NCBI RefSeq assembly: GCF_001194135.2 | Contig: NC_068988.1 | Span: forward strand, 92,822,002-92,878,258 | Source: Octopus bimaculoides | Lineage: Eukaryota | Length of the DNA: 56,257 nucleotides | Direction: 5' to 3' | Shown here: positions 18,075 through 47,001 of the stretch, piece by piece | Layout of the letters: every line of letters starts with the position of its first letter | Position numbering within the stretch: the first letter of the stretch is position 1 | Position numbers and translations under genes: made by a program | Notes under the pieces: generated by a model | The model's database searches: none | Told to the model about the DNA's origin: nothing | What the model saw: the letters and a program-made list of their open reading frames with translations, nothing else

Positions 18075-18290
18075 GTATAAGGATAAAATTATGCAGGCAG
18101 GTATCGAGGTAGCTTTCAGATATATTTCAGATTACCGCTAACCTCATCAAGTTACAATAAGTGTCAATAGTCGCTTGGTGTTAGCAACTTCGCTGTAATT
18201 CATCTGACGAGTAACTCCAGGTATGCTTCCCTGGATTATGAATACTATCAAGAATGTAGATTTCAAGCAATTATAAAGAATACGGAGACT
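18075..18290 (+). repeat. Interspersed repeat with degenerate hammerhead-like core; homologue at ~32715-32930
   Basis: Aligns from tgtata(a/g)ggataaaattat to agcaattataaa. Contains CTGACGA-gtaactccagg..cctggattat-GAATAC. Confidence 0.6.
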
Positions 18291-24381: not shown

Positions 24382-24527
24382 ATGTCAAGTTACCTTCATA
24401 CAAAAGAGAATTCGCAAATTTCGTATGAGACGATCCCTGAAAGATTGCGTAAGAGAGCTGAAGAATATCCAGGCAGAGTGACAATCGTTTGCTACGATGC
24501 AGAATTCCAAAGACACCAAATAACCAT
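24382..24527 (+). CDS. Coding exon 1 of an ANL-family (acyl-CoA synthetase/luciferase-like) gene; 48 codons + 2 nt
   Basis: ATG at 24382 reads MSSYLHTKENSQISYETIPERLRKRAEEYPGRVTIVCYDAEFQRHQIT+AT, then donor GTAAGT at 24528. AT joins the first G of each downstream exon to give in-frame ...QIT-M-KE(V/M)YD, the A1 motif region. The SYxH...TIP..L...AE..P.R pattern is typical of ACSF2-like N-termini. An in-frame TGA lies in the 5' UTR. Confidence 0.9.
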
Positions 24528-24570
24528 GTAAGTATATGCGAAAGTGAATTAAATATTTGAACCCAAAATA

Positions 24571-26156: not shown

Positions 26157-27615
26157 GAAAGAGGTGTACGATGGAGCGGTGAAGTTCGCAAAGGCTTTGA
26201 TGAAACTAGGCATTAAAAAAGGAGACACAATTGCATTTTGTGTTCCTAACTGTGTGGAATGGATGAGCTACGATATTGGAATCATGATGACGGGAGCTTA
26301 TTCTATGAGATTAATGTTTGGATTAGCAGATATGAAATCTATTATAAAAGGATGTAGTGCTGTTGTATTTGGATCCAAATCTATTTGGGACAATTTCTTA
26401 ACTATTGCACAAATAAATGATAATGGAAAAGTATCCTGCGAAGCGTGTCTTGATTTGAAGTTTGCCATTGATGTATCCAATACAGATGGACCAGCCAATG
26501 CTTTATCTGCTGCTAAATTGATGGCAGAAATAAGTGAAGATGTCGCAGTTGAATTTCCTTACATTGACCCAGAGGATATTGCATCAATCAATCAGACTTC
26601 CGGAAGCACAGGTGTGCCCAAAAGTATCTGTCACAGCCATTTTGAATACTTGAACTTACCTGATTCAGATCATAATGAGAGTTCTCGCTTTATCATATAT
26701 AATAGTCGTCCAATGGGATATATTGGAGGATATCCGAGGACTGTGCTAACCAGAGGATCATTGCATGTCAGTGGAGACGTAGAAATGCTGAATGATCCGA
26801 AGAATCTCGATTTTGTTATAAACATATTGCAGAGAGAAAAATGCAACATGGTTAGTGTTGCACCACAAGATATGAAGCGACTTAGCAACCGTGATTTCCG
26901 TGTCGATATAATAATATCAGGTGGAGACATGATTACCCGGGATACAATAGAACATGCTTTGAAGATTGCAGATTATTTCTTAGTTGCTTATGGAAGTACT
27001 GAATCTGTCTTCGTATCTTACAAACTTTTTACGAAAGAAAACATTTCGGAACATCGACAAGGAATGTTGGGTCGGCCAGTTGAAGGTACGGAAATCAAAA
27101 TTGTTGACGAGGAGAAGAGGGTTGTAGATATTGGAAAGACAGGCTATTTGTATTTTCGAAGTAAATGGGTAGCAAAAACACATCTGGATGGTACTTCATG
27201 TTTAGAAAATGGTTGGTATCCAACATCAGATATTTGTTACTTAACTGAAGATGGTGATCTCATAATGGTTGGAAGAAGCACAGATTTTATTAAGAAGTGT
27301 ACAGTAAAGTTATCTATTAAACTTATTGAAGATTACGTCGGACGTCATCCGAGTGTAGATGCTGTGGTTGTCGTACCAATCCCAGATCAGGCGGTTGGAG
27401 AACGTGTGTGTGCTTGTGTTACCCTTCGACCAAATCAAGAGTTCAATGAAGAAGAATTGAAAAAGTTTTGTACGGAAACAATGCCGCATCCAGATAACTT
27501 TGATTGTGTATCGATGCATCCTGATTATATTTTATATTTTCCTTCATTTCCACTTTTGGCTAGTGGTAAGTTTGACAAAAAGACTATAACAAGTTTGGCT
27601 CTTAAGAAAATTTAA
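26157..27615 (+). CDS. Terminal exon copy 1 of the ANL/AMP-binding enzyme; 534-aa protein when spliced to exon 1
   Basis: Acceptor cttttctttacAG at 26155-26156. Intact ORF with P-loop NQTSGSTGVPK, YGSTE, YPTSD, GRSTDFIK and C-terminal PLLASGKFDK (catalytic Lys). TAA at 27613-27615. Confidence 0.93.
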
Positions 27616-27706
27616 AAAATGTAATAATTGAATTAAATTATCAAGATGAACAAACGAGCATTTTGGTTTTCGCTGTTTAACATATATGTGTTAAGGTTTC
27701 CTTCTA

Positions 27707-27712
27707 AATAAA
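27707..27712 (+). terminator. Polyadenylation signal of exon copy 1
   Basis: AATAAA ~92 nt after the stop, in a 3' UTR that aligns with that of copy 2. Confidence 0.65.
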
Positions 27713-28787
27713 GGTGACATACTTCGTTAAATATATACATTTATGTGTATATGCTTACATACGTACATACATACATTCATACATGCATATATGCACATAC
27801 AAATATACATACATACATACATACATACATACATACATACATACATACAGGCCAGAAATGTGAAAGACTTTTCCATTTTTTCTAAGCGTTAAACTAATAC
27901 ACCTGCGTGTTGTTCTGTCACCTGTCTTTGTCTTTTGTTTTCTGTACATTTGAACCATGTATTACATAATCTCACGTGCTTACCCCAGTTTGATCCTACC
28001 TGGCTAAACTTCCTCCTCTCATGGGCCCTCATCTCTCCTAACTTATTCTCGAACCTTAGGTATCTCTCCTCATCCACCTAACAATCACCCCACCTGGATT
28101 ATAATTGGGAGTTTGTACATTTTCTAACTCTACCACCATGGATCTTACTATGCACCTTCGATGATGTATATCGCACTAATGATGTATATCGCACTACCAC
28201 GACTTGTCGGACTTTTGGAAAATTTGAACTTCGTACGGTAATAACTCCTTTTTATCTTTATCTCCTATTCCTCATTCCAGTATGCCTAATCACAAATCCA
28301 TTTTCCTCCACCTACGCCACCCTCTCAAACATTATCTCATCTCGCTTACTTTCCGTTGCCTCCAATCTTCTCTCAACGTTTCCCCATTCACTTTCAGAAA
28401 AAACTTGACTCTTCAGTCACTTTCCTTCCTCAGTCGCCGCCTTCATCACAACCTCATCCCCAAACGTTTCCGCCTCCATTTCCACCTTACTCCCCACTCT
28501 TATCCATCCTCTCTCCCACGTCCTGCCCAATCATGCGTGCCACCATCAGTTCTAATCTCTCCAAAATACATACCCTCAACCGCCTCCTCCCCCTTGCTTA
28601 CTCCATCTTTTTCTCCTCTTACACCCCCCTTCGTTGCTCACTCCATCCTACATTTCATGTTCCATTTCAACCGTGTTCTCCACGACTCTCTTGCTCGCAC
28701 TAAACACCATAAACTCCACTCACGCCTTCATCCTGTTCTGCCCGATGCCACTACACCCACTCCTTCCTTCCCACTTCCTAACCCTTT

Positions 28788-28820
28788 CCCTAACCCTAAC
28801 CCTAACCCTAACCCTAACCC
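28788..28820. repeat. (CCCTAA)5 inside the Penelope-like element
   Basis: Directly visible. Confidence 0.9.
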
Positions 28821-29989
28821 ACTCCTTCTTTCGCACTTCCTAACCCTTTCCCCTTCACGCCAACCTCGCTACTGTTCCACCTTCTCACATATCACTTCCT
28901 CCTCTCTTTCTCCTCCCAGCCTTCTACTGTCTCCATCACCCCTATCCCACCTTACTCCCCTTCCTCTACCCAAACCACTCCACTTTACTTTGTTACTAGC
29001 ATTTCTCTAGCTCTCCCCCTCTCCTTAGTAGGGGATCTCCGTTTCATATCTCTCATTCTGTTTAGTTACGAGTTTCGGACCCGTGCTGATGTCTAACAGT
29101 TCGTGCGCCACAATACTCCATCTGCATCTAATGAAGAAGACTGCTTCACTGACCTGGGCTGCCGACCATCTCACTGGACGCCAGCTCCCTCCCATTCGGT
29201 TTCAGGCAGTTGATCAATTTGCTAGTGTCAGTCAACGTGTTGTGGACGGGTTCAACTTTCGCAGGCGTCCCCGATATTTCGACATCTCCCGGACCGAACC
29301 CTCGGCCCTTCAATGTCTCCGACGCCGTCAAGACATCATCATCAAACCGGCCGACAATGTTAGAGCTGTGGCGGTATGACATGCAGAACGCTGTCGGGCT
29401 GATGCGCTTTGCCAACTTCAAGACACCTCCTTCTATCGTCCTAGCTTCACGCCCCAGTTCCATGTCTATTGTCCTTGCTCCACTTCATACTCTCAATGGA
29501 TTGTATCATCCACAGTTCCGGACCTCATTTCCTCCTACTGTATACCTCCCATCGTCCCCAACTTCATTGTCCGTACCCACCCACTATTTACTTCTTTCCA
29601 AAGATCCATACGCCCCATGGTTTTCGCCCGCAGCTGCCTCGCCTCACTCATCTCCAAGTACATCGATCTTGTCCTCGCATCACACCCCTAGCGACTTCCC
29701 TCTCTCCACATATTCAAAATACCAAACATGCTCTCCGTTTATTTAATTCTTTCTCTTCCTCTCCTAGTTCCCCACGACTCCTGTTCACCCTCGATATTAA
29801 ATCATTATATACTGCAGTCCTGTACTTCCACTCAACCGGCCATTTGCTACATCTGTTTGTGTAGATCTGTCTTTGCACAGAGGCCACCTGGACTCCCGCC
29901 TCCGCCGTGAGCACGAAATGATTTTCTCTCTTCATTCCTATGCTCCCTTTGGTTTCAATTCGTTATCTCTCTTTATCTAAAACCAACCC

Positions 29990-30775
29990 TACACACATTC
30001 ACACACATCTCCCACCTTTAATTGCTTTCCTTCTTCCACCCCACACCTCTACACCACCTAACTCAGTATCCTCACCACACACCATTAGGCACACCCTCAC
30101 ACACACATGTACTAACATATACCTCCCCACTCCACACACACTAGTAAGCGATATCTCCCAACCATTAACTCTCACCACCCTTATCCCACATCTCACCTCC
30201 ATGAAAACCTCCACAACACTCAATATTCACTCATGTGAATACACTCAATACACACGCACACAACACGTAGAAACAGACAATATGAACATGCACACAACAT
30301 GCATAAACACACAACTTTTGTGCATAAAAATACACAATACACACGCATGGTTTAGGGTCACGCACACAAACACACACACATACATACACACACACACACA
30401 CACACACTCATAAGGAACAAAAACTTCGTGTACAAACACACACACATGAGTACACACTACACGAGCAAGTACACATTAATTGCAACATATAAGTGATTGT
30501 ACACGCACATACAGACATTTGATATGCTCACACACCTGATAGCCTCACACATGCGTACTATACACAGCTTCACACGCATATACGCACATCCATACATACA
30601 CTGGTACATGAATACACGGAATACACACAACTCCACACAATGCACGCACTGATTTCCTTATGCACACAGACACACATACACACGACCATGCGCATACACA
30701 GATTCACAAAATTTTAAGCTTATCAACACATACATTCATACTCGCTCACCACCATCCACACACACTCTTATACAG
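29990..30775. repeat. Degenerate CA-rich low-complexity tract (another at 22800-23010)
   Basis: Directly visible. Confidence 0.85.
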
Positions 30776-30779
30776 CATT

Positions 30780-31045
30780 TGTTGTATTTCCCTCGGAAGA
30801 CTCGCAGAGATAACACAACGAGTTATACAAATTTAATTATTACATTTATTATTCAATTATATACAAAGAACGCACTCACCCAATGTTCGTTATGAATAAA
30901 CAAAAGTCATGTCCGCCATACATATATCAATGACATTTTACTACGACAGTCACACAAGACAACAACAATGAAACAATGAACTCAGACGAACCACAGTGAC
31001 ACACGGAACGTCAGACGAATTACATATCTAACAGTCCATATAACA
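30780..31045. mobile_element. Solo LTR (266 bp) with 5-bp TSD
   Basis: Termini TGTTG...TAACA; GCATT at 30775-30779 and 31046-31050. Confidence 0.75.
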
Positions 31046-31399
31046 GCATTCTTACATACACACACGTGCTTGTGCATCCCAGTTCAGCCGAGTCACCCTT
31101 ATCATCTCCTCTCTACTCAGCCTCTTTCTAAGGGTCACTTCATTATGTTAAACCATCAATCCCAACAAGCTTTTTTTCCTCTCTCCGTCTTTTTTTGTCT
31201 CTCCACTTTTTTAACTCTCATCCCTTTCTGTCGAAAAGTGTAAGCTCGAAACGTCAAAGACTTTTCCATGCTTCCCGGGTGGCTTGTTCTCTCGCCTGTC
31301 TTTGTCCTTTGCTTTCTGTAGATCCCGCTAGTGATGAATATTTCTCATCCTATTGGTCAAAGAATTCCTCAACAGCAGGTGCTTCTAGATGTCTCACCA

Positions 31400-31640
31400 T
31401 TGTATAAGGTGCACAGAGTGTGCTTGTAAAGACAAGAACATGACATACATTGATGAGATTTTTAGAAGCATTACGGAGAGATTAAATGAACATTTGAGAC
31501 AACATGACAGCAAAAATGGTCCCCCATACTCTACCAACATTCCAGAAACCATATTGGGCTGACTTACATCCGCATTTTATCGAAGAACCCGAAGGACACA
31601 TTCACTCAGACACATACAGGAGTACGTCCTCATAAATGAA
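31400..31640 (+). mobile_element. Penelope-type GIY-YIG endonuclease fragment
   Basis: CIRCTEC...TYIDEIFRSITERLNEHLR resembles the YIGET.R....R..EH motif. Confidence 0.55.
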
Positions 31641-32510
31641 ACGTCTCCCCGTACGAAGTAGGAAATACACGTAGAAGGTAGTGGTACCCCAATACCCACA
31701 GTATATACATACACAGGCAGATTTGTTAGTAGGCTGTTATGTAGGCGAATATATATATACATATATATAATCTCTGAACGAGGTATAAACAGCAGCAGCA
31801 CGGCGACGTGAAGTATATTTGCCACTTAAATGCGGCTAAACCCTAAGGGTGAATGCTACTGTAGCTTTTAGCCCCAGGAGAACATCTCCTCCACCTGGAT
31901 ATTGATACATAGGCAGGTAGACAAATGGATATGTAGATAAACAGATAGGTAAATAGTAGATAGGTACATAGGTAATATGGACAGACAAGTACACACACAA
32001 ACACAAACACATGAATATGCAGAATACATACATACATACAAACGTATACACATGCATACATACACATACATACATACATACATATGTGTATACACATGCA
32101 CGCTGATGCACACACATTCGCACAACCAAACAAAAAGAACGCAGTTCCGATTACAGGCAAAGTCAACAACTATTGAAGAGGTTGTAAGAAGCTATGAAAA
32201 TTTTCGAAAAAAAGAATAAGTAAATGAGTAGAAATCGAACAGGTGATTGTGTTAATTAATTAGACATTAAGACAGGATTATTCTCCCCAGACACAACAAA
32301 ATATGCTTCAACACACGAATTCACTTAAGGAATCTTGCAAACAAAGCACAAAAAAGAAATATATATATATATATATATATACACCAGTTGTTGAGTGTCC
32401 CACCTATAGGGGATCCATGGTAGATGTGTCGAAACAATTGTCGTGATTAACAATAAATTCTCGTATATTCCATCTCCCGTCATTCATTTGCCATATATAT
32501 ATATATATAT

Positions 32511-32558
<48 letters not shown>

Positions 32559-32588
32559 AATATGTGACAATTATTCGGTAGCCATAAT

Positions 32589-32649
32589 GATAAAACTCCG
32601 AGTTTCGGATGTCTGGGCGGAAACCCACGTCGCCATCTCTTCAGTTATC
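32589..32649 (-). ncRNA. Candidate type I hammerhead ribozyme
   Basis: Minus strand: GATAA-CTGAAGA-GATG...CATCC-GAAA-CTCGGAG-TT-TTATC. Helix I GATAA/TTATC, palindromic helix III ACTC(G)GAGT, GUU cleavage triplet, one bulged C in helix II. Confidence 0.6.
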
Positions 32650-32669
32650 TGGCCATCGATATACATACA

Positions 32670-32709
<40 letters not shown>

Positions 32710-32956
32710 ATAAGTGTGTATAGGGATAAAATTATCCAGGCGTCTACCGTGGTAGCTCTCAGGTATATTCCAGGTTACGGCTAACCGCTTCAACTAGTAT
32801 CAAGCGACAAAAATTGCTAAGTATTAGCAACCTCGCTGAAATTCTTCCGATGGGTAACTCCGGTTTCACTTCCCTGGATTATATATATTATCAAGACTGT
32901 AGATTTCTAACAGTTATAAGCAATTATAAATGTTAGTGGCTATGTTCTAAAGACAG

Positions 32957-33290
32957 ACGCAGGCGTGGCTACGTGGTAAGAAGGTTGCTTCACAACCCCA
33001 TGGATTCGAGTTCAGTTCTATTACGTTGCACCTTGGCCAGTATCTTCTGCTTTTCCTCGGGCCGACCAAAGCTTTGTGAGTGGATTATATATTTCACTTG
33101 TGTGCCTTCGTATCTGTCTTTGTCCCCCACCTCACCGCTTGACAACCGGTGCTGGTGTGTTTACGTCCCCATAACGTAGCGGTTCGACAAAAGAGACCAA
33201 TAGAATAAATACCAGGCTTTAAAAAATATAATCTCCAAGGTGATGCCCCAGCATGGCCGCAGTCTAATGACTGAAACAAATAAAAGATAA
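32957..33290 (+). mobile_element. tRNA-derived SINE with internal microsatellite
   Basis: Head ggcgtggctacgtggtaag...ttcgagttcag, body cgcttgacaaccggtgctggtgtgtttacgtcccc, tail gcatggccgcagtc.aatgactgaaacaa. Copies at 40075-40460(-), 23655-23780(-), 36780-36970(+), and 44790-45345(+, split by microsatellites). Confidence 0.8.
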
Positions 33291-33321
<31 letters not shown>

Positions 33322-33364
33322 GATATGTAAATATTTGCGTGTGTGTTTCTTCAACAAGAATAGT

Positions 33365-34022
33365 AGCTGTTAGATCATGTGAACTCAATAAAGCCATCCA
33401 TACAGTTCACAATGGAAAAAGAAAAAGACAATCAGCTGGCATTCCTGGACGTATTAATAACACGCACCAAGAATGGATTCAGGACATCCGTACACCGCAA
33501 GCTGACCTTCACTGGACGATATCTCAACTTCAATTCCCACCATCCATACAGTGTAAAGAGAGGGATTGCTCAGTGCCTAAAACATCGAGCAATGAATATA
33601 AGTAGCGATCGTGATACCCACCACGAAGAAATGATGAAGCTCAGTAACAATCTGTTAAGCAACAACTACCCCAAAAGCATACTCTCCACTCCAATTATGA
33701 AGAAAAGAGAGGATGAAACCAATAAACTGTCTACAGTCTGTCTACCCTATGTGAAAGGCCTCTCCGAAAAGATACAAAAGATATGCAACCCATATGACAT
33801 CAGGACAGTATTCAAAAGTAATACAACACTTCGCAAATATCTCCTTCAGATAAAGCCACCAATAGAAGAGAATATGACCAAAAAACTGCGTGTACTCCAT
33901 CCCATGCAGCTGTGGTAGGTTATACAAAGGCGAAACATGTCGCCCCCTCAAAATAAGGGTAGAGGAACATCGCAAAGCTGTGACACGGTGAGATATTGAT
34001 AAATCGGGTATAGCTGATCATG
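33365..34022 (+). mobile_element. Young 5'-truncated Penelope-like element (RT thumb + GIY-YIG)
   Basis: IQFTMEKEKDNQLAFLDVLI..TGRYLNFNSHHP..LPYVKGLSEKI, one frameshift near 33885, then CVYSIPCSCGRLYKGETCRPLKIRVEEHRK. Confidence 0.9.
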
Positions 34023-34759
34023 ACGGCTGCAAACTCGTGTTCGAGTATTGCCAACGCCTGATCGAAAGATCCATACATGCGAATGCTACGACCAGCCACT
34101 TTTTGATAAGTCTTACCTCTTTTCAAGCGATGCCTGTGCATTTTTTTTTATAATGGGGGAATGATTTGCACAAATCCTGTCCCAGGTTCTGAACGTGAGC
34201 AACATAAACTCGAAAAGAAGAACTAGTCTACATCATCGAATATTGACAGTGTCACAGGTTTTCTCTCAGTGTTTCCCTCTCCTAGAGAGATGTTGTAACA
34301 GCAACACAGGGTCCTCTCACTCGCAGTGGGGCACCGCGCGCCTGGACACTAACCCAGGTATTTCCACGTCTCCGAGCATACAAACATGCATACATACAAA
34401 TGTACACATATTGTCAGTTGGCTGTTGACTGCTCATGAGCTTTTCTGCTCTTTGACAGGTTTAATTTTTCGTCCTGAAGGGTGTCGAACAATTATCCTTC
34501 TCACCAAACAAGTTTGATGGGGGTTGCCAGTTTAGGCACCGATTATACAACCATGCAACTGGTTGTATTGGGTTAAATGTTAGTAGCGCCCAAGAGCTCA
34601 CCTGGCATACACACATATATGTGCATATACATACATACACACATACACATACATATATACATACATACATACATACACATAAATACATACATACATGCAT
34701 ACATACATACATGCATACATACATACATACATATATACATACATACATACATACACAAC

Positions 34760-35510
34760 ACATCGTGGACAAAAGTTTGTCAGGAATTCAGCCTAACTAT
34801 CAGTCTGAAGAAGACCAAAGTACTGGGCCAAGGTGCCAAGCACCCCTCTCCACCATCGCTATCACCATCACCATCAACAGCTACAAGCTGGAAGTAGTCC
34901 ATGAATTCACCCACCTCGACTCTACCATCACTGATGACCTCTCTATGGACCCTGAGATCAATGGGAGAATTGGATGAGCGTCCTCCACATTTGCCAGGCT
35001 CACAAAGAGAGTCTGGGAAAATAGAAAACTGGCTGCAAACACCAAGATTGCTGTCTATACGGCGTGCGTCCTTAGTACGCTACTTTACGGTAGTGAGACA
35101 TGGAGTCTCTATTCCAGATAGGAGCGGCGTCTCAACGGCTTCCACCTTCGTAATTTGAGACGCATCTTGGATAACAAGTGGACCAACCACATTACCAACA
35201 CCGAAGTCCTCAACCGCACCAAGATACTCAGCATTCTCGGCCTGCTTCAGCCGCGTCGTCTGCGTTGGCTCGGTCATATACATCGCGTGCCAAATGGGAG
35301 GATCCCAAAAGACCTCCTGCATAGGAAATTGGCCACCGGCACACGAGCACGAGAACGATCTCATCTTTGTTTCAATGACGTTTGTAGGAGGGATATGTCA
35401 CTCGATCAAGACGTCCTGAGATGGGAGGAGGTCCCAAATGATCGCCGATATTGCAGACAAATACTGCGGAGAGGATGAAGCGAGCAGAAGACAAACAGGA
35501 ACTCGTCACT
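34760..35510 (+). mobile_element. RTE-clade LINE 3' fragment
   Basis: LTISLKKTKV, F.RLTKRVW, VLSTLLYGSETW, RRLRWLGHIHRVPNGRIPKDLL. Confidence 0.9.
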
Positions 35511-35521
35511 AAAAAAAAACG

Positions 35522-35563
<42 letters not shown>

Positions 35564-35852
35564 CACTACTACAGCCAACGATTCAAGTCAACGTACAAGA
35601 CAGCCATTATGTCCCCACACATAAAATGCTTCCACGTGAACTCTGTTGACACCAGTAAGAAACAATTATGAAATTTTCTTTGAATTACACTTTTTTAAAA
35701 AATATGTATTTTTGATAAGGTTAGTTTTTTCAGGAACCGAAACATGTAAAATATCTCTGAGAAAATTAAAATTTATCGTGTATAGTGGTGCTTTTAAACT
35801 TTTTTTTATAAATATATACCCACTCGTATGTCACCTACACTTTTTATCCATA

Positions 35853-35926
<74 letters not shown>

Positions 35927-37260
35927 GTCATATTTTGACATTTATAGGCATTTTTATGAACTACGTCCAATATTCGCGGTTTTTCATTATTCGTGTGTGG
36001 TCTAGGAACGTAACTCCTGCAAATACCAGGGGACTACTGTAATGATAAGTTGAACCTTGTATATAAGTAGTAGTTTGTATAAATGTAGTTTGATTGTCGG
36101 TATATATATATGGTTATGCATGAACTACTGAATAGAAAATGCTCGAGAAATAAAATGCACTTACCTATTTAAAACCTGAAACGCTGGGGAATCAAATCAA
36201 CGAATTGAAATAAGTTTTAGCAAATGCAAACAATTCGTATTGAAATGCAGAATTAGCAAATGCTAATGAGATTACCGTTATTAAGATGTCTGTTTGTACC
36301 CATGAAACAGTTATCGTCGAACTTCGGCATTTTTCGTCAAATTGTAATCTTTATTAATGGGTAAAACCAATTTGGCGAAAAAATGACCAGAGTCTGATAG
36401 AGAACCCGTGTCGTCATCATTTTTGTGTATGTGCGTAAAACAAGTTTTTGGTCTCAACTCATCCTTAGCGCATATTCCATCGGTGTATAAAATTTCAAGA
36501 AAATCGGCTGAAAACTTTAAAAGTCATGGCAGAAAATAACATTCATATGAGAATTTGCATTGAAATGTCCTATCGATTTTACCCTCTCAGATTCACACAC
36601 TTTTTGCAGCTGACCTTCAGTTTTTTAAGCCTTGTAACTGAACTCGGGAGGCCGGGCCTCCAGTATTGCCTCTCCCGATACACTTAAAGCCAAGAACTTT
36701 TTAGGCTGGCTCGAGTAAAATAACATATATGTGTATGTCTCAGTGTGTGTGCGCGCGCACGTGTGTGTGTGTATGTGAGTGTATTTTCATTTGTGTTTGT
36801 TTCTTCCACTGCTTGACAACTGGTGTTGAATTATTTACGTCCTCGTAAGCTAGCGGGTCGGCAAAGAGACGGATTGAATATAAACAGTACTGTTGCTGAT
36901 TTTATCGACTTCAAGGTAATTCCTCAGTATGGTTGCATTCCAATGACTGAAACAACTAAAAGATAAAAGCTACAGAAATCCATACATACAAACACACACA
37001 TGTGTGTATGTTCAGTTGATTGGAGCGCGGGCGGGGTGGAGTCAAAGAGTACAGAGGTGGAAGTTTACTGTGGTGTTTGTGAATTCAGAATTTACTATCT
37101 TGGCCATAGATATCACTGAGATTTCTGTTGGTAGATTAAACTATTACCATCGAAGTTATCTGCGCTTTCTTAATATAATATAGAAATGTAAATAACTTAC
37201 TATATCACGAAATTATGTGATTAGCGGCATACATGTTAAATATGTTACTTTTCTTTGCAG

Positions 37261-38725
37261 GAAAGAGATGTACGATGGAGCGGTGAAGTTCGCAAAGGCT
37301 TTGATGAAACTAGGCGTTGAAAAAGGAGACACAATTGCATTTTGTGTTCCTAACTGTGTGGAATGGATGAGCTACGATATTGGAATCATGATGACGGGAG
37401 CATATTCTATGAGATTGATATTTGGATTAGCAGATATTAAATCTATTATAAAGGGATGCAGTGCTGTTGTATTTGGATCCAAATCTATTTGGGACAGTTT
37501 CTTATCCATTGCACAAATAAATGATGATGGAAAAGTATCTAGCGAAGCGTGTCCTGATTTGAGGTTTGCCATTAATGTGTCCAATACACACGGACCAGCC
37601 AATGCTTTATCTGCTGCTAAATTGATAGCAGAAATAAGTGACGATGACGCAGTTGAGTTTCCTTACATTGACTCAGAGGATATTGCATCAATCAATCAGA
37701 CTTCCGGAAGCACAGGTGTGCCTAAACGTATCTGTCACAGCCATTTTGATTGCTTAAACAACAAGGATTCAGATTTTAAGGACACTTCTCTTATCATATT
37801 TAGCAGTAGGCCAATGGGATATAGTGGAGGATATCCGATGACTGTGCTAACCAGAAGATCATTGCATGTCAGTGGAGACGTAGAAATGTTGAATGATCCG
37901 AAGAATCTGAATTTTGTCATAGACATATGGCAGAGAGAAAAATGCAACATGGTTGGTGTTGCACCACAAGATTTGAAGCGACTTAGCGACTGTGATTTCC
38001 GTGTCAATATGATAATGTCAGGTGGAGACATGATTACCCGAGATACAATAGAAGATGCTTTAAAGGTTGCAGATTGCTTCTTAATTTGTTATGGAAGTAC
38101 TGAATGTTTCTTCATGACTAACAGAATTTTTACACTAAAAAACATTTCGGAACATCGACAAGGAATGTTGGGTCGACCAGTTGAAGGTACTGAAATCAAA
38201 ATTGTTGACGAGGAGAAGAGGGTTGTAGATATTGGAAAGACAGGCTATTTGTATTTTCGAAGTAAATGGGTAACAAAAACACATCTGGATGGTACTTCAT
38301 GTTTAGAAAATGGTTGGTATCCAACATCAGATATTTGTTACTTAACTGAAGATGGTGATCTCATAATGGTTGGAAGAAGCACAGATTTTATTAAGAAGTC
38401 TACAGTAAAGTTATCTATTAAACTTATTGAAGAATACGTTGGACGCCATCCGAGTGTAGATGCTGTGGTTGTCGTACCAATTCCTGACGAGGCAGTTGGA
38501 GAACGTGTGTGCGTATGCGTAACCCTTCGACTAAATCACAAGTTCAATGAAGAAGAATTGAAGAAGTTTTGTACAGAAACAATGCCGCATCCAGATAACT
38601 TTGGTTGTGTATCGATGCATCCTGATTATATTTTATGTTTTCCTTCATTTCCACATTTGGCTAGTGGCAAGCTTGACAAAAAGACTATAACAAGTTTAGC
38701 CATGAAGAAAATAACAAAAATGTAG
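37261..38725 (+). CDS. Terminal exon copy 2 of the ANL enzyme; 536 aa if spliced to exon 1
   Basis: Acceptor cttttctttgcAG at 37259-37260, same phase as copy 1. Intact ORF, ~85% aa identical to copy 1 by manual count, with one in-frame 3-nt deletion. Ends ...KKITKM-TAG. The ORF-track N-terminal extension from 37217 is intronic. Confidence 0.9.
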
Positions 38726-38812
38726 TAATAATTAAATTAAATTACCAAGATTAAGAAACGTGTATTTTAGTTTTCCCTGTTTAACATGTTAACGTGTTAA
38801 GGTTTCCTTCTC

Positions 38813-38818
38813 AATAAA
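38813..38818 (+). terminator. Polyadenylation signal of exon copy 2
   Basis: AATAAA ~88 nt after the stop, at the homologous position (ggtttccttct..aataaa..gg.gacat). Confidence 0.65.
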
Positions 38819-39724
38819 GGCGACATGCTTCATTAAATATATACATGTATATATGTATATGCTTACATACATGCATACATAAATACATACATACGTACAT
38901 TCACTCTTATTATCTCCCCTTCACTCAACCCTTTTCATAATGTTGAACAATTAATCTCAACAAACACTTTTTTCTGTTTCCGTTTTTTAACTATCTTTCC
39001 ATCCCCCCTCTTATCCCTTTCTGTCAAAGACCTCTCTACTGTTCTCGGAGTGCTTGTTGTTCTCTCACCTGTCTTTGTGTTTTGTTTTCTGTACATTTGA
39101 ACAATATATATATATATATATATATATANNNNNNNNNNNNNNNNNNNNNNNNNNNNNNNNNNNNNNNNNNNNNNNNNNNNNNNNNNNNNNNNNNNNNNNN
39201 NNNNNNNATAAAGGTAAGCAGACTTAGCGGTTATAGTAACCGACTAAGGCATAAAATACCCGTATTTACTATCGGTGTCAGTTAACCGTGTTAATTCTGG
39301 CCATGGGTATGCAGGTACAGTATGCTCGTCGAGTACAGGTAACAAGAGAAACAAATTTAGATAATTAGAAAATGGAGAAAACCCCAGTAGATTACCCGTG
39401 ACTCGTTGGGGCACCTGAAAAGTCTGAGTTTCCTAGAAACTGAGTTTTGTTTCGTACTTTTTTTTTCTCTTCCATTTTATTTCGCATGCTTTCAACGAAT
39501 GTGACATCGAAATCACGAGTAAACAGGTATTTTCCTCAGAAAAGTAAAGATTTGCCTACTATTTCTTGCATGCCCTGCTACCACGTAACACCTATTTCGG
39601 GTCCTTTATTGCAAATAGCTGTCACGTGGTGGCAGGGTGTGCTACAAATAACAGTAAAATCATTGGAGATGAGATACGTTGAATGCACTCGAAAGAAACT
39701 TATTGAAAAAAAAACTATTTCGCA

Positions 39725-40064
39725 CTGATGTTACGAACGGGTCTTTTACGAAATATTTATCTTACTTATAAAGTCATTTTCACTTAAAAATATTTTGCCT
39801 ATCATAATGTGTTAGAGTTTCTTCCCTTTCAGGGTGAAGTTATTTTCGGAGTATTTTCCCATTATGCACCGTTTTGGGTATTTGCACCCCAAACCCCCGA
39901 ATATCTCAATAACTAGTGGTCCGATTTACGCGGAACTTGTTTTATTCCGTTCGTATTCACATTTCAGGGACACTTTACTTTCAAATTATTTTCCCATTAT
40001 GCGCTATTTTGGCTGTGTAGCATTGCAAGCAAGCAAGATTGAACTTCACTTTTAATAGTATACA
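39725..40064 (-). mobile_element. Possible non-autonomous Helitron-like element
   Basis: Minus strand starts atgtatactattaaaagtgaag followed by (CTTG)n, the same architecture as the element at 56029. Confidence 0.4.
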
Positions 40065-40526
40065 TTTATATATTCTTTTATTCATATACTCGTTTCAGAC
40101 ATTTGACTGCGGCCATGCTGGAGAGCTGCCTTTAGTCGAACAAATCAACTCCAGGGCTAATTCTTCGGAAGCCTAGTATTTATCCTATCAGGCACTTTTG
40201 CCGAACGACTAAGTTACGGACGTAAACACACCAACATCTGTTGTCAAGCGATGGTGGGGGAACAAACACAGACACATAAACACATACACACGCACACACA
40301 CATATATATATATATACGATGGGGTTCTTTCAATTTCCATCTACCAAATCCATTCACAAGGCTTTGGTCGACCCGAGCTATAGTAGAAGACATTTGCCCA
40401 AGGTGCCACGCAGTGGGGCTGAACCCGGAACCATGTAGTTGGTAAGCAAGCTACTTACGATATATATATATACACACATACATCTATACATACATGCATG
40501 CATGCATGCATACATACATACATACA

Positions 40527-40557
<31 letters not shown>

Positions 40558-40762
40558 GTATGCATGTAGGTGTATAGGTATTATATGACTACCGATATGC
40601 AAATGAATACATACGAGGATCGGCCGAAAAGTTCACAGGCTCACCAACATGCTCCTATCGAATGCGACTGAATCCCACTACATACACACACACACACGCG
40701 CGCACATGTATGTATGTATGTATGTATGTATGTATGTATGTATGTATGTATGTATCAGCTTC

Positions 40763-40813
<51 letters not shown>

Positions 40814-42040
40814 GAGAAGAAAATTGAGAGTTAATGGTTAATAATCATTTATCAATAAATGGATAAACATTCATTCCTACAATTGTTTCAATTTGTACTC
40901 ATTCTATAAATCACAAATTTATGCAATAAATCAGCATTTATAAGTTATGGGCAAAATATCATCAGGGAAATATAAGACATTAAGAAATTACATGTTAACG
41001 AATCCGTTCTTTCAGCAAAGTAAAATATGGAATTGTTTCTATTTCTATTTTNNNNNNNNNNNNNNNNNNNNNNNNNNNNNNNNNNNNNNNNNNNNNNNNN
41101 NNNNNNNNNNNNNNNNNNNNNNNNNNNNNNNNNNNNNNNNNNNNNNNNNNNNNNNNNNNNNNNNNNNNNNNNNNNNNNNNNNNNNNNNNNNNNNNNNNNN
41201 NNNNNNNNNNNNNNNNNNNNNNNNNNNNNNNNNNNNNNNNNNNNNNNNNNNNNNNNNNNNNNNNNNNNNNNNNNNNNNNNNNNNNNNNNNNNNNNNNNNN
41301 NNNNNNNNNNNNNNNNNNNNNNNNNNNNNNNNNNNNNNNNNNNNNNNNNNNNNNNNNNNNNNNNNNNNNNNNNNNNNNNNNNNNNNNNNNNNNNNNNNNN
41401 NNNNNNNNNNNNNNNNNNNNNNNNNNNNNNNNNNNNNNNNNNNNNNNNNNNNNNNNNNNNNNNNNNNNNNNNNNNNNNNNNNNNNNNNNNNNNNNNNNNN
41501 NNNNNNNNNNNNNNNNNNNNNNNNNNNNNNNNNNNNNNNNNGTGATTAAACTATTTCTTCCTTTCTATGATGTTCTACCCTACTGATCATTTTCTGTATA
41601 TTTGTAATGGTTTTTATGTAAGTCTCCTAATTATATAGCCCCTAGAAACTATAAAATCATATATGTAATAGTACCTGTAACATTGCAACTTATAAAATCT
41701 CTTCGGAATACCGCCAACTGTCCTCACCACTCCCATACCTACGACCTCCCCTTTTAGGGCTACCTTTATCTCTTCCCTACCTCAAATTTTAATACACTGT
41801 CTCGTCTCTTTAAATGTAAGTTTTATATATTTCTTATCACTTTCTATAAATTCTTATTATTTTGTTTTCTTACTTTGTTATCCTCACCATTTAACCTCTT
41901 ATCCCTTAAAGTTCTTGAAAGTGGTGTATATTCTTAGCTACAATAGCAACAACATGGATTTCTTCCATCTTCTTGCTATGTTAAAGTATTTGAGTAAAAT
42001 TATATTAATGTGTCCGACTGATTAAAATCCTGTTTATTTG

Positions 42041-42126
42041 TGCAGCTGATGACAGCCCTGCATTTAAATTGATGTAATGATTGCATTGTTCAATTAAATG
42101 GAGCCGCTTGAAACGATCGTACTGCA
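42041..42126 (+). ncRNA. Candidate type I hammerhead ribozyme in a Penelope-like 3' remnant (~41545-42180)
   Basis: TGCAG-CTGATGA-[long helix II, catttaaattga/tcaattaaatg]-GAAA-CGATCG-TA-CTGCA. Helix I 5 bp, palindromic helix III ACGATCGT, GUA site; the first helix II pair is a C.T mismatch. Confidence 0.6.
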
Positions 42127-42322
42127 TCACTTCTTGATATCCTGTTGCTTATTTTGATTTTATTCACCTTACTTTCGAGCTGTGCGGATAATACCGAACT
42201 GACTTGGTGCTTCAGCTTAAGAACCTAATTTAACTGAATCTCAATTATTTCTCTACAGATACATATGTACATACAGACAGATATGTAAAAGCATATACAT
42301 GAGCGGACACACACACACACAT

Positions 42323-42369
<47 letters not shown>

Positions 42370-42864
42370 CACGTAAAAAAATCGTATATGAACGCTATTG
42401 ATATTTATGCCCATTGGTTAAAGTAATCTGAATATTTGTACATGTGCTTAAGCGTTTGAGAAAAATATCAAATCATAATGGTTTGTCACTTTATGCGTGT
42501 TTACGTAATCATATGACAATAAAAGGTTTACTGTTACTATTCTATATACATACGTACACACATACATACATATATACATATATATGTGTGTGTGTCTGTG
42601 CGCGCGCGCATGTGATCATTACGACGTTCAACTCTATAGTATTTGGTTTTAATTATCGTATAATTAAATTAATGTTGTGATTTAATTTATTTACGTAAAA
42701 CGATTTGTGTATGTACATGTTTGTTTATTCTCGTTAATATTTATAAGATTGACAGTGAGGTTACAATTAAAAGTATCCTGTTATTTATTAATCTGTTTAT
42801 GAAATTAAATTATAACTAGTATTAATATAATCTATAATCTATATTTGATTTACATTATTAGCTA

Positions 42865-43640
42865 CTATTTCATCAGGGATTCCATATGCCCTAAGGATTT
42901 CTGCCATCTTATCTCTGTGTAGAGAGTCAAAGGCCTTGGAGAAATCAACAAATAACAAAACTGCATTAAGGTTTTGGCTCGTACCTATTCCAACATCCCC
43001 CTAACTATGAGAATTTGACCCGATGTAAGGCGGCTCTTCCCGAATCCATTTTGATTTTTCCTAAGAACTCTTTCAATTTGAGGTTGGATTCGATTGAGTA
43101 GCAATGCATTGTAAATCTCTGCTGCAATTGGTGTTAATGTAGTTCATCTATGGTTTATTGCAAGGCCCAGATACCCTTTTAGCGGGGAAAAGCAGAATAC
43201 ATCCTCCTGTTCAGACTTTTATCTCGGTTTGATGATATAATGAGTTGTACGATTTGAGAAGAATGTCATTGAAATCGCCGGTTTCTCAGACTTCAGGGGG
43301 GATGTCATCAAATCCTGCAGCCTTTCGGTTTTTGGTCTTCCTCAGTACGACTTCAAGTTCTTCTATCGAGAAGGGTCCCTGCTTGATATCCAGGACCTCC
43401 TCAACAATACGATGGATGAGCTGGTTTGGATGATTCGGTGATTTGCCAAGAAGGTTTTGAAAATGGTCTTTCTAGTTATTCAGTATCTCCTGTAGGTTAG
43501 AGGCTTTCAATGTCGCTTTGAAAGATTTCTTCCGACTACTCCATTTACTGTCTGCCACGTCAAAGAAGAGGGTTTGTTGTCTGCTGCGTTTTTGATTTTG
43601 TCGATTTGGTTTTGAATGTATTTGTGCTGTTTCATCTGAT
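42865..43640 (-). mobile_element. RTE-like LINE RT fragment
   Basis: Minus-strand translation ENQNGF..LLFVDFSKAFDSLHRDKMAEILRAYGIP. Confidence 0.8.
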
Positions 43641-43960
43641 ATAGTACGTTAAGTTCTTTCAGTGCTATTCAGAGAGGAAAAAGTTTACCTCACAGGGACT
43701 ATGTGAGATGGTTAAATAGAGGAAAACATTAGAGTTCAATATGAGGAATTATTTTGGAAAAGGAAGCAAATAAGGAGTATATAGTGAAATAGGAGAATGA
43801 ATGTAGAAATAAGAATAAAAATGTATAAAGATGTTATAGTTGCAGTTCGATTATCCAAAAAAAGTGGTGTGTAGAAGTGGTATAAGTAAGCATGTAATTT
43901 TCATGATTTGAGGATTTGACATCTCCTTTCAACATGTAAGTAGACTACTTAGTGGTTTTC

Positions 43961-44571
43961 CTTACATGCTGAAAGGAGATGTCAAATTCTCAAACCACGA
44001 AAATTACATTCTTATTTATAACACGTTGAATGTAAGTGGGCAAGAAAATTTGAAAAATAAAAAAAAACCCAGTTATTTCTATACCAGTTATTCCACCATT
44101 AATAATCAAATAATCTGTGGATCTTCAGTAGAAACTGCTGGAGGTGTATAATTATAAAACTCAAATACGTACCATATCCCAAAGGACACACGTGCATATC
44201 GATTGTTATCTTTATACATCGTGAATTTAATTCACGTCTTCAACCAACGCACCAAGCCAGAATAAAGCAGCAGTGAATAAAAGTTCAGCAGTGAATTATT
44301 TGACTCAAGAATTGAAATAGTTAAATAAAAATATACCATGTATGCTCGATATGGACGTGTGTCCTTTGGAATATGGTATGTATCTGAGTTTTATAATTAT
44401 ACATCGCCCGCAGTCTCTACTGAAGATCCACAGATAATTTATTTAATTATTGATGGTATAGAAATAACTGGTCTTTTTTCAATTTTTTCAAATTGTCTTG
44501 CCCGTCTACGTTCAACGTGCTATAAATAAGAATGTAGTTTGGGGATTTAACATCTCCTATCAACATGTAAG
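43961..44571. mobile_element. Foldback element with ~250-bp inverted arms
   Basis: 43961-~44212 is the reverse complement of ~44345-44571 (e.g. gtggatcttcagtaga/tctactgaagatccac; ccaaaggacacacgt/acgtgtgtcctttgg). Confidence 0.85.
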
Positions 44572-44714
44572 GAGACTTCTTAGTGGTTTTCCTCTTAGTG
44601 TGTAATTTATACACACGTATACATATATGTATATAAATAATGTATGGTCTACAGACAACTTTTTTACGCATGCTGGCCACTGGTATAAATTATTATTTTT
44701 AATGATTTTTACCC

Positions 44715-44765
<51 letters not shown>

Positions 44766-44914
44766 ATATATATACGTATGTATATAATCACAAGTAGGTC
44801 TCTGTGATTAAGAAGCCGGTTTAGTCTTGATCAAGTGTCTTCTAATGTAGCCCTGAACCTTCCAGTGCCTTGTAAGTGAACTGAGTAGACGGAAACTGTG
44901 CGGAAGACCTTCAG

Positions 44915-44970
<56 letters not shown>

Positions 44971-45092
44971 GCTCACTATCAACTGACTGAAAAAAGAGCA
45001 CTCAGTAGCATTTCTGAGGCTCACTCGGCAAAAGAACATATATGTGTATGTGTGTCAATGTGNNNNNNNNNNNNNNNNNNNNNNNNNNNNNN

Positions 45093-45158
<66 letters not shown>

Positions 45159-45632
45159 ATGTATGCGTGTGTACGTGTGTGTATGTGTATTTTCGTCTTT
45201 GTTTGTTTCTTCCACTGCTTGACAACCGGTATTGATTTATTTACGTCCTAGTATGCTAGCGGATCGGCAAAGTGCCGGATTGAATAAAAAAATTACTGTT
45301 CCGATTTGATCAACTTCAGTAACTGAAACAAGCATGAGATAAGAGCTACAGACAGACATATATACAGACACACACATCACATATGTGTATATTCAGTTGA
45401 TTGCAAGGAGGGTCGAAGTGCACTGTGGTGGTGGTGAATTCAGAATTTACTATCTTGGCCATATATTTTAAACAGGGCTAATTATACGATAACAATCGCT
45501 GAGATTTCTCTTGGTAGATTAGACTATTATTTGCACTTTCTTAATATAATATAGAAATGTAAAAAAAACTACTATATCATGAAACTACTTGTTTAGCAGC
45601 ATACATGTTTAATATGTTACTTTTCTTTGCAG

Positions 45633-46923
45633 GAAAGAGATGTACGATGGAGCTGTGAAGTTCGCAAAGGCTTTGATGAAACTAGGCATTAAAAAAGGAG
45701 ACAAGGTTGCAGTTTGTGTTCCTAACTGTGTAGAATGGATGAACTACGATATTGGAATCATGATGACGGGAGCTTATTCTATGAGATTAATGTTTGGATT
45801 AGCAGATATGAAATCTATTATAAAAGGATGTAGTGCTGTTGTATTTGGATCCAAATCTATTTGGGACAATTTCTTAACTATTGCACAAATAAATGACAAT
45901 GGAAAAGTATCTAGCGAAGTGTGTCCCGATTTGAGATTTGCCATTGATGTATCCAATACAGATGGACCAGCCAATGCTTTATCTGCTGCTAAATTGATGG
46001 CAGAAATAAGTGAAGATGTCGCAGTTGAATTTCCTTACATTGACCCAGAAGATATTGCGTCAATCAATCAGACTTCCGGAAGCACAGGTGTGCCTAAATG
46101 TATCTGTCACAGCCATTTTGAATATTTAAGCATGCCCGATTCAGATTTTAAGGAGACTTCTTATTTTACTACATTCAATAGTCGTCCAATGGGATATATT
46201 GGAGGATATCCGTTGACTGTGCTAACCAGAGGATCATTGCATGTCAGTGGAGACGTAGAAATGCTGAATGATCCGAAGAATCTCGATTTTGTCATAAACA
46301 TATGGCAGAGTGAAGAATGCAACATAGTTGGTATTTCACCACAAGATTTGAAACGAGTTAGCGATCGCGGATTCCGAGTTAATATGGTAGCATCAGGTGG
46401 AGACATAATTACCCGGGATGAAATAGAACATGCTTTGAAGATTGCAGATAGTTTCATGGTTGCTTATGGAAGTACTGAAGCTTTCATCATATCTCATCGA
46501 ATTTTTACCCCAGAAAATATTTCAGAACATCGACAAGGAATGCTGGGGCGACCAGTTGAAGGAACGGAAATCAAAATTGTTGACGAAGAGAAGAGGGTTG
46601 TAGATATTGGAAAGACAGGCTATTTGTATTTTCGAAGTAAATGGGTAACAAAAACACATCTGGATGGTACTTCATGTTTAGAAAATGGTTGGTATCCAAC
46701 ATCAGATATTTGTTACTTAACTGAAGATGGTGATCTCATAATGGTTGGAAGAAGCACAGATTTTATTAAGAAGTCTACAGTAAAGTTATCTATTAAACTT
46801 ATTGAAGATTACGTCGGACGCCATCCGAGTGTAGATGCTGTGGTTGTCGTACCAATTCCTGACGAGGCAGTTGGAGAACGTGTGTGCGCATGCGTAACCC
46901 TTCGACTAAATCACAAGTTCAAT
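45633..46923 (+). CDS. Terminal exon copy 3 of the ANL enzyme; 3' end lost in an N gap
   Basis: Acceptor cttttctttgcAG at 45631-45632. Open frame with the same motifs up to LNHKFN, then N-run 46924-47001; about 58 codons are missing. Confidence 0.85.
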
Positions 46924-47001
46924 NNNNNNNNNNNNNNNNNNNNNNNNNNNNNNNNNNNNNNNNNNNNNNNNNNNNNNNNNNNNNNNNNNNNNNNNNNNNN
47001 N

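Follow-up and report, generated by a model that had tools for sequence, protein, structure and literature searches.

The window analysed here is a 56,257-nucleotide (nt) stretch of an Octopus bimaculoides chromosome (NC_068988.1, positions 92,822,002 to 92,878,258), which equals GCA_001194135.2 base for base, gaps included. It appears to hold one gene of the ANL superfamily in which a shared 5′ exon is followed by three alternative terminal exons, c1, c2 and c3, and, judging from the sequences, we consider it fairly probable that the isoforms differ in the acid that they accept. A switch of substrate preference by exon choice would be the most likely function of this arrangement, a proposal that we hold with a confidence ranging from slightly under even to somewhat over it. 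The uneven divergence of the three exons has two causes, namely gene conversion in the flanks and a higher ratio of nonsynonymous to synonymous divergence (dN/dS) in a core segment, and the core sites that are most often replaced were found, in our alignment, to match acyl-pocket residues of characterised ANL enzymes.

A shared 5′ exon and three large terminal exons

The coding exons and the poly(A) signals are as follows.

24382..24527, + strand: shared 5′ coding exon, covering Met1 to the second base of codon 49 (tblastn 49/49 residues, NCBI isoforms X1 and X2)
26157..27615, + strand: alternative 3′-terminal exon c1, 485 codons and a stop, acceptor ttttctttacag followed by G, encoding AMP-binding and AMP-binding_C
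27707..27712, + strand: c1 poly(A) signal AATAAA, 92 nt past the stop, within the ~170 nt of 3′ flank common to c2
37261..38725, + strand: alternative 3′-terminal exon c2, 487 codons and a stop, with AATAAA at 38813
45633..46923, + strand: alternative 3′-terminal exon c3, 430 codons read, with the last ~59 codons and the 3′ untranslated region (UTR) in an assembly gap

The shared exon ends at a GTAAGT donor at 24528 in phase 2, and the same donor is found in O. sinensis and O. vulgaris. The large exons lie in open stretches of the + strand (26107-27612 for c1, 37196-38722 for c2 and 45613-46923 for c3), and their acceptors at 26157, 37261 and 45633 all read ttttctttRcag followed by G in the same phase. 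Similarity from unit to unit extends from ~91 nt upstream of the acceptor to ~170 nt past the stop, and AATAAA lies 88-92 nt after the stop in c1 and c2; the stop and poly(A) signal of c3 fall in the gap, and both are present in the O. vulgaris orthologue. The 5′ exon joined to c1 gives the NCBI protein 'ACSF2 isoform X2' (P0001) with 100% identity, and the 5′ exon joined to c2 gives isoform X1 (P0007).

A second 49-residue N-terminal exon was found neither in the window nor in the arrays of O. vulgaris and O. sinensis, and tblastn searches with three different N-termini (E up to 10) detected no private 5′ exon before c2 or c3. There is also no downstream constant exon, so the layout is not that of an internal mutually exclusive cassette. 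The earlier note had spoken of a choice among three exons, a picture that needs a correction, as the exons are not of an internal, swappable kind. c1 and c2 each end in a stop and a poly(A) signal of their own, and the three are alternative 3′-terminal exons, served by a single donor through same-phase acceptors; each large exon encodes ~91% of the protein (~485 residues). In the mechanism that we propose, the single 5′ exon (residues 1-49) would be spliced to any of c1, c2 and c3, and the isoform would be set by splicing and polyadenylation at the first large exon versus read-through to a later one. That every one of the three is used in mRNA is an inference; the joining of c1 and c2 to the 5′ exon is seen in NCBI models only.

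Two observations speak against including c3 in this gene: no NCBI model joins c3 to the shared 5′ exon, and the O. sinensis c3 orthologue (isoform X2) starts at Met52. It was considered whether c1, c2 and c3 could be three independent tandem genes, with c2 and c3 having their own promoters and starting at Met52 or in private mini-exons. Such an arrangement, which we judge improbable, would fit the Met at the third exon codon (KEM...) in c2, in c3 and in every copy from O. vulgaris and O. sinensis, the MYDGAV start of the O. sinensis c3-type product and of the O. vulgaris models, and the NCBI model of c3, a separate 435-aa gene with its first exon at 44338. However, a second 49-residue exon is lacking in all three arrays, and the same-phase acceptor is perfect in 13 of 14 large exons, the sole loser (O. 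sinensis exon D, sin_D) being frameshifted as well. NCBI models join the shared exon to c2 and, in O. sinensis, to exons A-C, and one further such model extends beyond the locus. A start at Met52 would cost the N-terminal domain one helix and three strands, as judged from an AlphaFold2 (AF2) model. The mini-exon of the NCBI c3 model (44338-44375) has an ATG start (MYARYGRVSFGI..) followed by GTATGT; it gave no O. vulgaris match by blastn and is therefore probably a spurious or lineage-specific first exon. For annotation, this means that c3 in O. bimaculoides and the separate O. vulgaris "genes" are probably mis-modelled alternative exons.

The exons c1, c2 and c3 encode the AMP-binding domain PF00501 (Pfam positions 25-382; E 2e-36 to 5e-39) and the C-terminal domain PF13193 (E 5e-5 to 3e-9), both at or above the gathering score, although in c3 only the first half of the C-terminal domain is matched because of the gap. 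The motifs TSGSTGVPK (A3), YGSTE (A5), GRSTD (A8) and SGK(F/L)DKK (A10) are present in c1 and c2, and A7 reads YPTSD, with Ser replacing the Gly of the TGD-like motif. The AF2 model of P0001, with a predicted local distance difference test (pLDDT) score of 89.5, has its best Foldseek matches in the PDB among firefly luciferases, PchD, DhbE and 4CL (TM-scores 0.78-0.83), and in this model the shared exon encodes, from its very start, the helix and strands typical of an ANL N-terminus. By its motifs and modelled two-domain fold, the protein can be taken as a bona fide ANL superfamily enzyme. The best matches outside cephalopods are 27-29% identical, with bacterial acyl-CoA ligases scoring about equally, and no NCBIfam model reaches its cut-off (best 175 bits vs 476); the NCBI label "ACSF2, mitochondrial" appears to be weakly founded.

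A divergent core between converted flanks

Residue differences were counted on a MAFFT alignment, in which the core (the middle segment) was taken from TSGSTGVPK to 13 residues past YGSTE. The core segments and the two conversion tracts have the following positions.

26596..27042, + strand: c1 divergent core, from motif A3 to 13 residues past A5 (P0001 residues 196-344)
37700..38143, + strand: c2 divergent core
46072..46518, + strand: c3 divergent core
38213..38433 = 46588-46808, + strand: c2/c3 conversion tract, 221 nt identical, covering motifs A6-A8
26268..26420 = 45744-45896, + strand: c1/c3 conversion tract, 153 nt identical, near the 5′ end

Between c1 and c2, 39 of 148 core residues differ, together with one 1-codon indel, and then 2 of the next 95, which agrees with the manual count given in the earlier note (~40 of ~140, then 2 of ~95). 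The corresponding values are 38/149 and 2/95 for c1 and c3, and 41/148 and 0/95 for c2 and c3. The variants quoted in the same note, SHF(EYLNLP/DCLNNK/EYLSMP), GYP(R/M/L), (IIIS/MIMS/MVAS)GG and (VA/IC/VA)YGSTE followed by SVFVSYKL/CFFMTNRI/AFIISHRI, were all recovered. Over the N-terminal 146 residues there are 9-18 differing sites among the three copies, and the c1-c2 differences cluster in the core compared with the rest of the exon (Fisher p=7e-8). Nucleotide identity between copies is 84-87% in the core and 92-99% in most flanks, with the C2 tail of c1 (86-89%) being as divergent as the core.

Gene conversion was examined with a GENECONV-style run test over 330 polymorphic sites, which detected the 221-nt tract (P<2e-4) and the 153-nt tract (P=0.004). 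Inside the longer tract lies a stretch of 126 nt that all three copies share (c1 27173-27298); c1 versus c2, taken alone, was not significant in the run test (P=0.27), the tract being interrupted by a single nonsynonymous difference. In sliding-window Nei-Gojobori counts, synonymous divergence (dS) drops to 0 across codons 320-390 (exon alignment) for every pair of copies, and additional zero-dS tracts, specific to particular pairs, lie elsewhere in the exons. The conversion tracts show a dS of 0.14-0.25 between species, by which a constraint at the RNA level as the cause of the A6-A8 identity was ruled out.

Neighbour-joining trees of the segments gave different groupings (exons are named here by species and by copy or letter). 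In the core tree, the pairs bim_c3/vul_G and bim_c2/vul_F have bootstrap values of 100% and 68%, respectively, and exons A-E of O. vulgaris and O. sinensis form one clade (98%), with bim_c1 attached beside it. In the trees of the C and N segments, c1, c2 and c3 of O. bimaculoides are monophyletic with 100% and 70% bootstrap, respectively. Since the core is grouped by orthologue and the flanks by species, the exons are a conversion mosaic, and the flanks are homogenised by gene conversion, that is, by concerted evolution. The identical tracts of 126-221 nt, the zero dS and the within-species monophyly together indicate that the segment with 2 of 95 differences is largely a conversion tract, so its near-identity is largely the result of gene conversion, and purifying selection is not the sole cause.

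The three exon types predate the split of O. bimaculoides and O. vulgaris, and gene conversion since then has repeatedly homogenised the N-terminal and A6-A8/hinge parts within each species. The A3-to-A5 core, with a dN/dS 2-4 fold higher, has escaped conversion. Most likely, the isoforms would consequently share the ATP/AMP-binding and domain-rotation machinery and differ in the carboxylic acid accepted.

Pocket positions and rates of change in the core

Core positions were mapped onto known substrate pockets by alignment at ~20% identity, using L-INS-i with 90 homologues and two references, P. pyralis luciferase (100% identical to 1BA3/1LCI) and DhbE residues 173-527. For motif A4 versus DhbE, phmmer placed a 2-residue gap and the 92-sequence L-INS-i alignment placed none; the latter was used. 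Pocket residues were those of GrsA (D235, A236, W239, T278, I299, A301, A322, I330 and C331) and DhbE (H234-S240, A333 and V337) (PMC11253843) and the luciferin-pocket contacts from a docking study (PMC12150632), the luciferase residues used being R218, G246, F247, A313, R337, T346, A348 and I351. In the octopus protein, luciferase R218 aligns with position 216, G246 with 238, F247 with 239, A313 with 302, R337 with 324, G339 with 326, T346 with 333, S347 with 334, A348 with 335 and I351 with 338. From DhbE, N235 aligns with position 238, S240 with 243, V329 with 326 and V337 with 334.

Among the three exons, 13 of 20 pocket-homologous positions are variable, compared with 41 of 128 other core positions (p=0.005), in a union list that was drawn up after the variable sites had been seen. 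The nine code positions of GrsA alone provide the cleaner test, and 7 of these 9 are variable versus 47 of 139 (p=0.012). On the tree of 14 exons, nonsynonymous changes per site amount to 2.67 at pocket-homologous and 1.16 at other core positions (permutation p=0.001), whereas synonymous changes per site are about equal (0.68 and 0.58). Twelve core sites have at least five nonsynonymous changes; six of them are pocket-homologous (216, 243, 302, 324, 326 and 334), and the other six (212, 229, 244, 322, 337 and 342) are off the pocket list. Site 302 has 7 nonsynonymous and 0 synonymous changes.

The core also stands out in its rates. Between the O. bimaculoides copies, nonsynonymous divergence (dN) in the core is 0.146-0.157 and dS is 0.15-0.27, giving a dN/dS of 0.57-0.98, compared with 0.24-0.47 in the N segment and 0-0.27 in the next 95 codons. 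Between orthologues, dN/dS is 0.33-0.66 in the core and 0.07-0.29 elsewhere. Parsimony on the segment trees gave nonsynonymous:synonymous counts of 202:88 (core), 73:63 (N segment) and 49:76 (C segment), and the core differs from the combined flanks (122:139; p=7e-8). Core dN is 16 fold that of the next segment (dS 4.5 fold) and ~3 fold that of the other flanks (dS 0.4-1.4 fold). Measured against the distant paralogue P0009 of O. bimaculoides, core dN is 4 fold higher and dS ~1.4-2 fold higher, with a dN/dS of 0.30-0.39 vs 0.11-0.19, and c1 differs from P0009 at 40% of residues in the core vs 13-14% in the flanks. The sliding-window check proposed in the earlier note, which asked whether Ks rises as much as Ka in this segment, thus showed that Ks is raised in the core far less than Ka.

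An intrinsically fast core in this family was considered as a cause and ruled out by single-copy orthologues, in which there is no core excess. Between P0009 of O. bimaculoides and P0012 of O. vulgaris, 12% of N-segment residues, 9% of core residues and 7% of those in the next segment are different, and P0013 and Argonauta P0016 differ uniformly by 28-33% across the segments.

Several points, besides the retrospective make-up of the 20-position list, weigh against a switch of substrate. Roughly half of the variable sites are not pocket-homologous; they lie in the 212-231 linker, which contains the indel and has a lower pLDDT (73-78), and in helices 263-292. Within the core, the contrast in nonsynonymous:synonymous changes between pocket and non-pocket sites reaches only p=0.07, and at positions 243 and 283 the alignment leaves an uncertainty of one residue. 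dS is also raised in the core, 1.4-4.5 fold relative to the neighbouring segments. No site class with a dN/dS significantly above 1 was found: by parsimony and Nei-Gojobori counts the segments reach at most ~1, and dN/dS is ~1.0 at pocket-homologous sites and ~1.6 at the nine GrsA sites, neither being significantly above 1. Per-site parsimony tests of selection have no power with 14 sequences (14 large exons from three species). As dN/dS never significantly exceeds 1, relaxed constraint fits as well as adaptive divergence. The claim in the earlier note that divergence is concentrated in the substrate pocket can therefore be retained in part; the concentration between A3 and A5 and the enrichment at pocket sites support it on the present alignment, but about half of the variable sites would lie outside the pocket motifs.

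A serious rival is a recombination mosaic only, in which the core was unreached by conversion, or has become too divergent to pair homologously and so to be converted, and drifted under relaxed constraint, with isoforms that are biochemically equivalent or differ only in expression. We regard this as unlikely. In its favour, dS falls to 0 in the following segment with a mosaic elsewhere, dN/dS is at most 1 everywhere, and the core is fast between orthologues too. The lower nucleotide identity of the core would itself suppress conversion. However, the rise of dN in the core far exceeds that of dS, the enrichment at pocket-homologous sites concerns nonsynonymous and not synonymous changes, and the core is not fast in the single-copy orthologues. 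Group-specific residues are also kept across species: c2 and vul_F share N216-K217, DTS-L and T336-N337 (NNK, TNRIFTL), and c3 and vul_G share C205, Y226, T228, I283-S284 and A332 (ETSYFT.FNS, GISPQ). Finally, the Argonauta paralogues P0010 and P0011 combine the same divergent core with near-identical flanks; their proteins differ by 4% over the N segment and 3% at the far C-terminal end, compared with 33% for the core, 22% for the segment after it and 31% for the 5′ exons. A mosaic with a divergent core thus appears, from these protein comparisons, to recur in the Argonauta lineage without a shared-exon array.

If the isoforms do differ in substrate, the locus diversifies enzyme specificity from a single promoter, with recombination keeping the ATP-handling scaffold uniform while the pocket diverges. 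It would then be a natural domain-swap experiment on specificity residues, in a poorly understood cephalopod ANL clade that includes light-organ proteins of the firefly squid.

The array in other cephalopods and known systems

In O. vulgaris, one 5′ exon is followed by seven large exons, A-G. In O. sinensis, at least four large exons follow a single 5′ exon, and several gene models, four of them in locus L002, all begin at the same 5′ exon and end at successive large exons. The comparisons of c2-type and c3-type exons rest on the O. vulgaris loci, and the O. sinensis members P0006 (c2-type) and P0005 (c3-type) are proteins only. Across the three Octopus species, the same-phase acceptor is intact in 13 of 14 large exons, with sin_D as the exception.

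In sin_D (L002 19335-20788) and vul_E (L005 12587-14040), a common 1-nt deletion changes GTCAGCGGAGAC to GTCAGCGAGAC and causes a frameshift at residue ~255, and the acceptor of sin_D has been lost through a change of cag to caa. The frameshift and the lost acceptor make sin_D a decaying pseudo-exon, and the sin_D/vul_E pseudo-exon looks, from the shared deletion, to have been inherited by both species. The existence of such pseudo-exons in the array, together with the unread end of c3, raises the question of whether c2, c3 or both are decaying as well, with their core divergence being neutral decay. This explanation is largely refuted and, in our view, very improbable: the open reading frames of c1 and c2 and the read part of c3 are intact (1.3-1.46 kb), as are all the catalytic motifs, the dN/dS between orthologues is low across the segments (about 0.1-0.5), which together with the intact frames marks all copies as coding, and the flanks of the c3 gap are collinear with a complete O. 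vulgaris orthologue.

Exon relics covering residues ~128-195 were observed 3′ of O. vulgaris C and D (L005 8948-9151 and 11510-11715) and 3′ of O. sinensis C (L002 18236-18439). By their sequence, these relics can be read as remains of partial duplications; no relic of this kind was found in the O. bimaculoides window. There is one c1-type exon in O. bimaculoides and five (A-E) in both O. vulgaris and O. sinensis. The O. bimaculoides spacer upstream of c2 (27616-37260) is collinear with the O. vulgaris E-to-F spacer (L005). Together with the grouping of A-E in the core tree, this suggests that c1-type exons multiplied in the vulgaris/sinensis lineage. Repeats swell the O. bimaculoides spacers (9.6 kb vs 1.0-3.9 kb between exons A-F in O. 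vulgaris).

In Argonauta hians, the relative P0011 has just two exons, and no array lies within 10 kb of it (L007); the O. bimaculoides paralogue P0009, 55 Mb away, has a large exon with the same kind of acceptor. A two-exon gene is likely to be ancestral on these comparisons, and tandem duplication of its 3′ exon unit probably produced the Octopus array; alternatively, the array may have come about by duplication of the whole gene and then loss of the 5′ exons.

The assembly gaps in and beside the array are as follows.

39129-39207: gap in the c2-c3 spacer, non-coding
41052-41541: gap in the c2-c3 spacer, non-coding
45063-45092: gap in the c2-c3 spacer, inside a (GT)n microsatellite
46924-47001: gap outside the range covered by the earlier note, cutting c3

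The first three gaps all lie in the spacer between c2 and c3, so the reading frame is unaffected, and O. vulgaris matches collinearly on both sides of each. Those at 39129-39207 and 41052-41541 are in or beside a repeat-rich insertion of ~3.4 kb that is absent from O. vulgaris. No further exon copy was found in the O. vulgaris F-to-G spacer, which was scanned for all but ~2.2 kb, and none is therefore expected inside the O. bimaculoides spacer gaps. In the O. vulgaris orthologue, ~431 nt correspond to the gap at 46924-47001, and they comprise the final 59 codons together with 3′ UTR; this gap is the reason why the A10 lysine region of c3 is unread. The sequence 3′ of this gap is unrelated to the tails of c1 and c2 and aligns ~250 nt past the stop of the O. 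vulgaris c3 orthologue; by this collinearity, c3 is probably complete in the animal, A10 lysine region included.

The exons also differ at their C-terminal ends, which read ...LKKI in c1 (27601-27615) and ...KKITKM in c2 (38702-38725), and ...KKIKKM, KNM, SKM or KKCSNK in other species. Some of these ends resemble weak tripeptides of the peroxisomal targeting signal type 1, from which it might be speculated that exon choice may also alter localisation.

Other open stretches in the window belong to repeats. In intron 1, positions 24621-24932 (+) match the helix-turn-helix domain of a Mos1/mariner transposase (PF17906, E=3e-7) and can be identified by this match as a transposon fragment between the shared exon and c1. 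A reverse-transcriptase fragment lies at 16462-16953 (+; PF00078, E=4e-9), and the open stretches 17418-18077, 33367-33915, 35122-35475 and 51751-52203 have no Pfam match and resemble retroelement debris. (CA)n and (TA)n microsatellites are abundant.

We know of no activity for octopus ANL proteins, and O. bimaculoides is not luminous, unlike the firefly squid Watasenia scintillans. The crystal proteins wsluc1-4 of W. scintillans, obtained from photophore crystals, are candidate ATP-dependent luciferases; in GenBank, nothing but O. bimaculoides proteins matched them at more than 30% identity (40% at most), their identity to human ACSF2 is just 24-26%, and squid and octopus sequences group together in the published tree (PMC4899746). 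A search for Octopus with ACSF2 gave only this paper, and no description of the octopus array was found in the searchable literature. Judged by these published matches, wsluc1-4, which are likewise cephalopod ANL proteins, appear to be the closest studied relatives (PMC4899746), and the O. bimaculoides proteins that they matched probably belong to the same cephalopod-specific ANL clade. P0018 and P0019 (46% identical; from transcriptome and metagenome sources) may be squid members. A wider proposal, which we put forward only tentatively and hold to be a shade less probable than the neutral mosaic, is that the array serves as an octopod cassette for enzyme diversity, in which conversion would keep the scaffold, selection would keep changing the acyl pocket and regulated choice would give a tissue-specific substrate. 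Some isoforms might then use aryl or heterocyclic acids and not fatty acids, because this family has yielded the 'luciferase' candidates of the firefly-squid crystals.

The adenylation domains of nonribosomal peptide synthetases (GrsA-PheA, with a 10-residue specificity code, and DhbE, with an aryl-acid code; PMC11253843) have the same fold, and 7 of their 9 core code positions vary among the octopus exons. Unlike them, the octopus protein is stand-alone, without a carrier domain and without an equivalent of Asp235 (position 238 is I/S/I), and the code serves here only as a map of the pocket. In human ACSL6, the alternative exons are short internal mutually exclusive cassettes. ACSL6, an acyl-CoA synthetase, belongs like the octopus protein to the ANL superfamily and is subject to an exon switch, but the octopus gene exchanges nearly the whole enzyme in a last exon that, in c1 and c2, brings a poly(A) site along. 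An exon switch of the fatty-acid gate domain is reported for human ACSL6 and ACSL1 (PMC1543647, PMC2868784); it replaces a motif near the ATP-binding site (PMC2868784), and isoform activities are reported to differ (PMC13184358).

Tandem variable exons joined to one or more constant exons are a feature that the octopus locus shares with UGT1A, the clustered protocadherins, lola and mod(mdg4). UGT1A and the protocadherin clusters have variable first exons and common 3′ exons, and Drosophila lola and mod(mdg4) have arrays of alternative 3′ exons. The first two are thus the mirror image of the octopus locus, as it is the first exon that varies there, whereas lola and mod(mdg4) vary DNA-binding domains and the octopus array varies the pocket region of an enzyme. 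Protocadherin variable exons are said, in work of Noonan et al. from 2004, to be partly homogenised by gene conversion while the specificity-determining parts stay diverse. Anopheles gambiae GSTD1 (aggst1-alpha) reportedly has a shared 5′ exon and alternative 3′ exons, with isoforms differing in substrate preference, as described by Ranson et al. in PNAS in 1998. The octopus locus is like GSTD1 in having a common N-terminal 5′ exon and tandem downstream exons that encode the substrate-binding remainder. It differs from this glutathione S-transferase gene in that its exons carry ~91% of an ANL protein and in that concerted evolution of the parts outside the pocket is documented.

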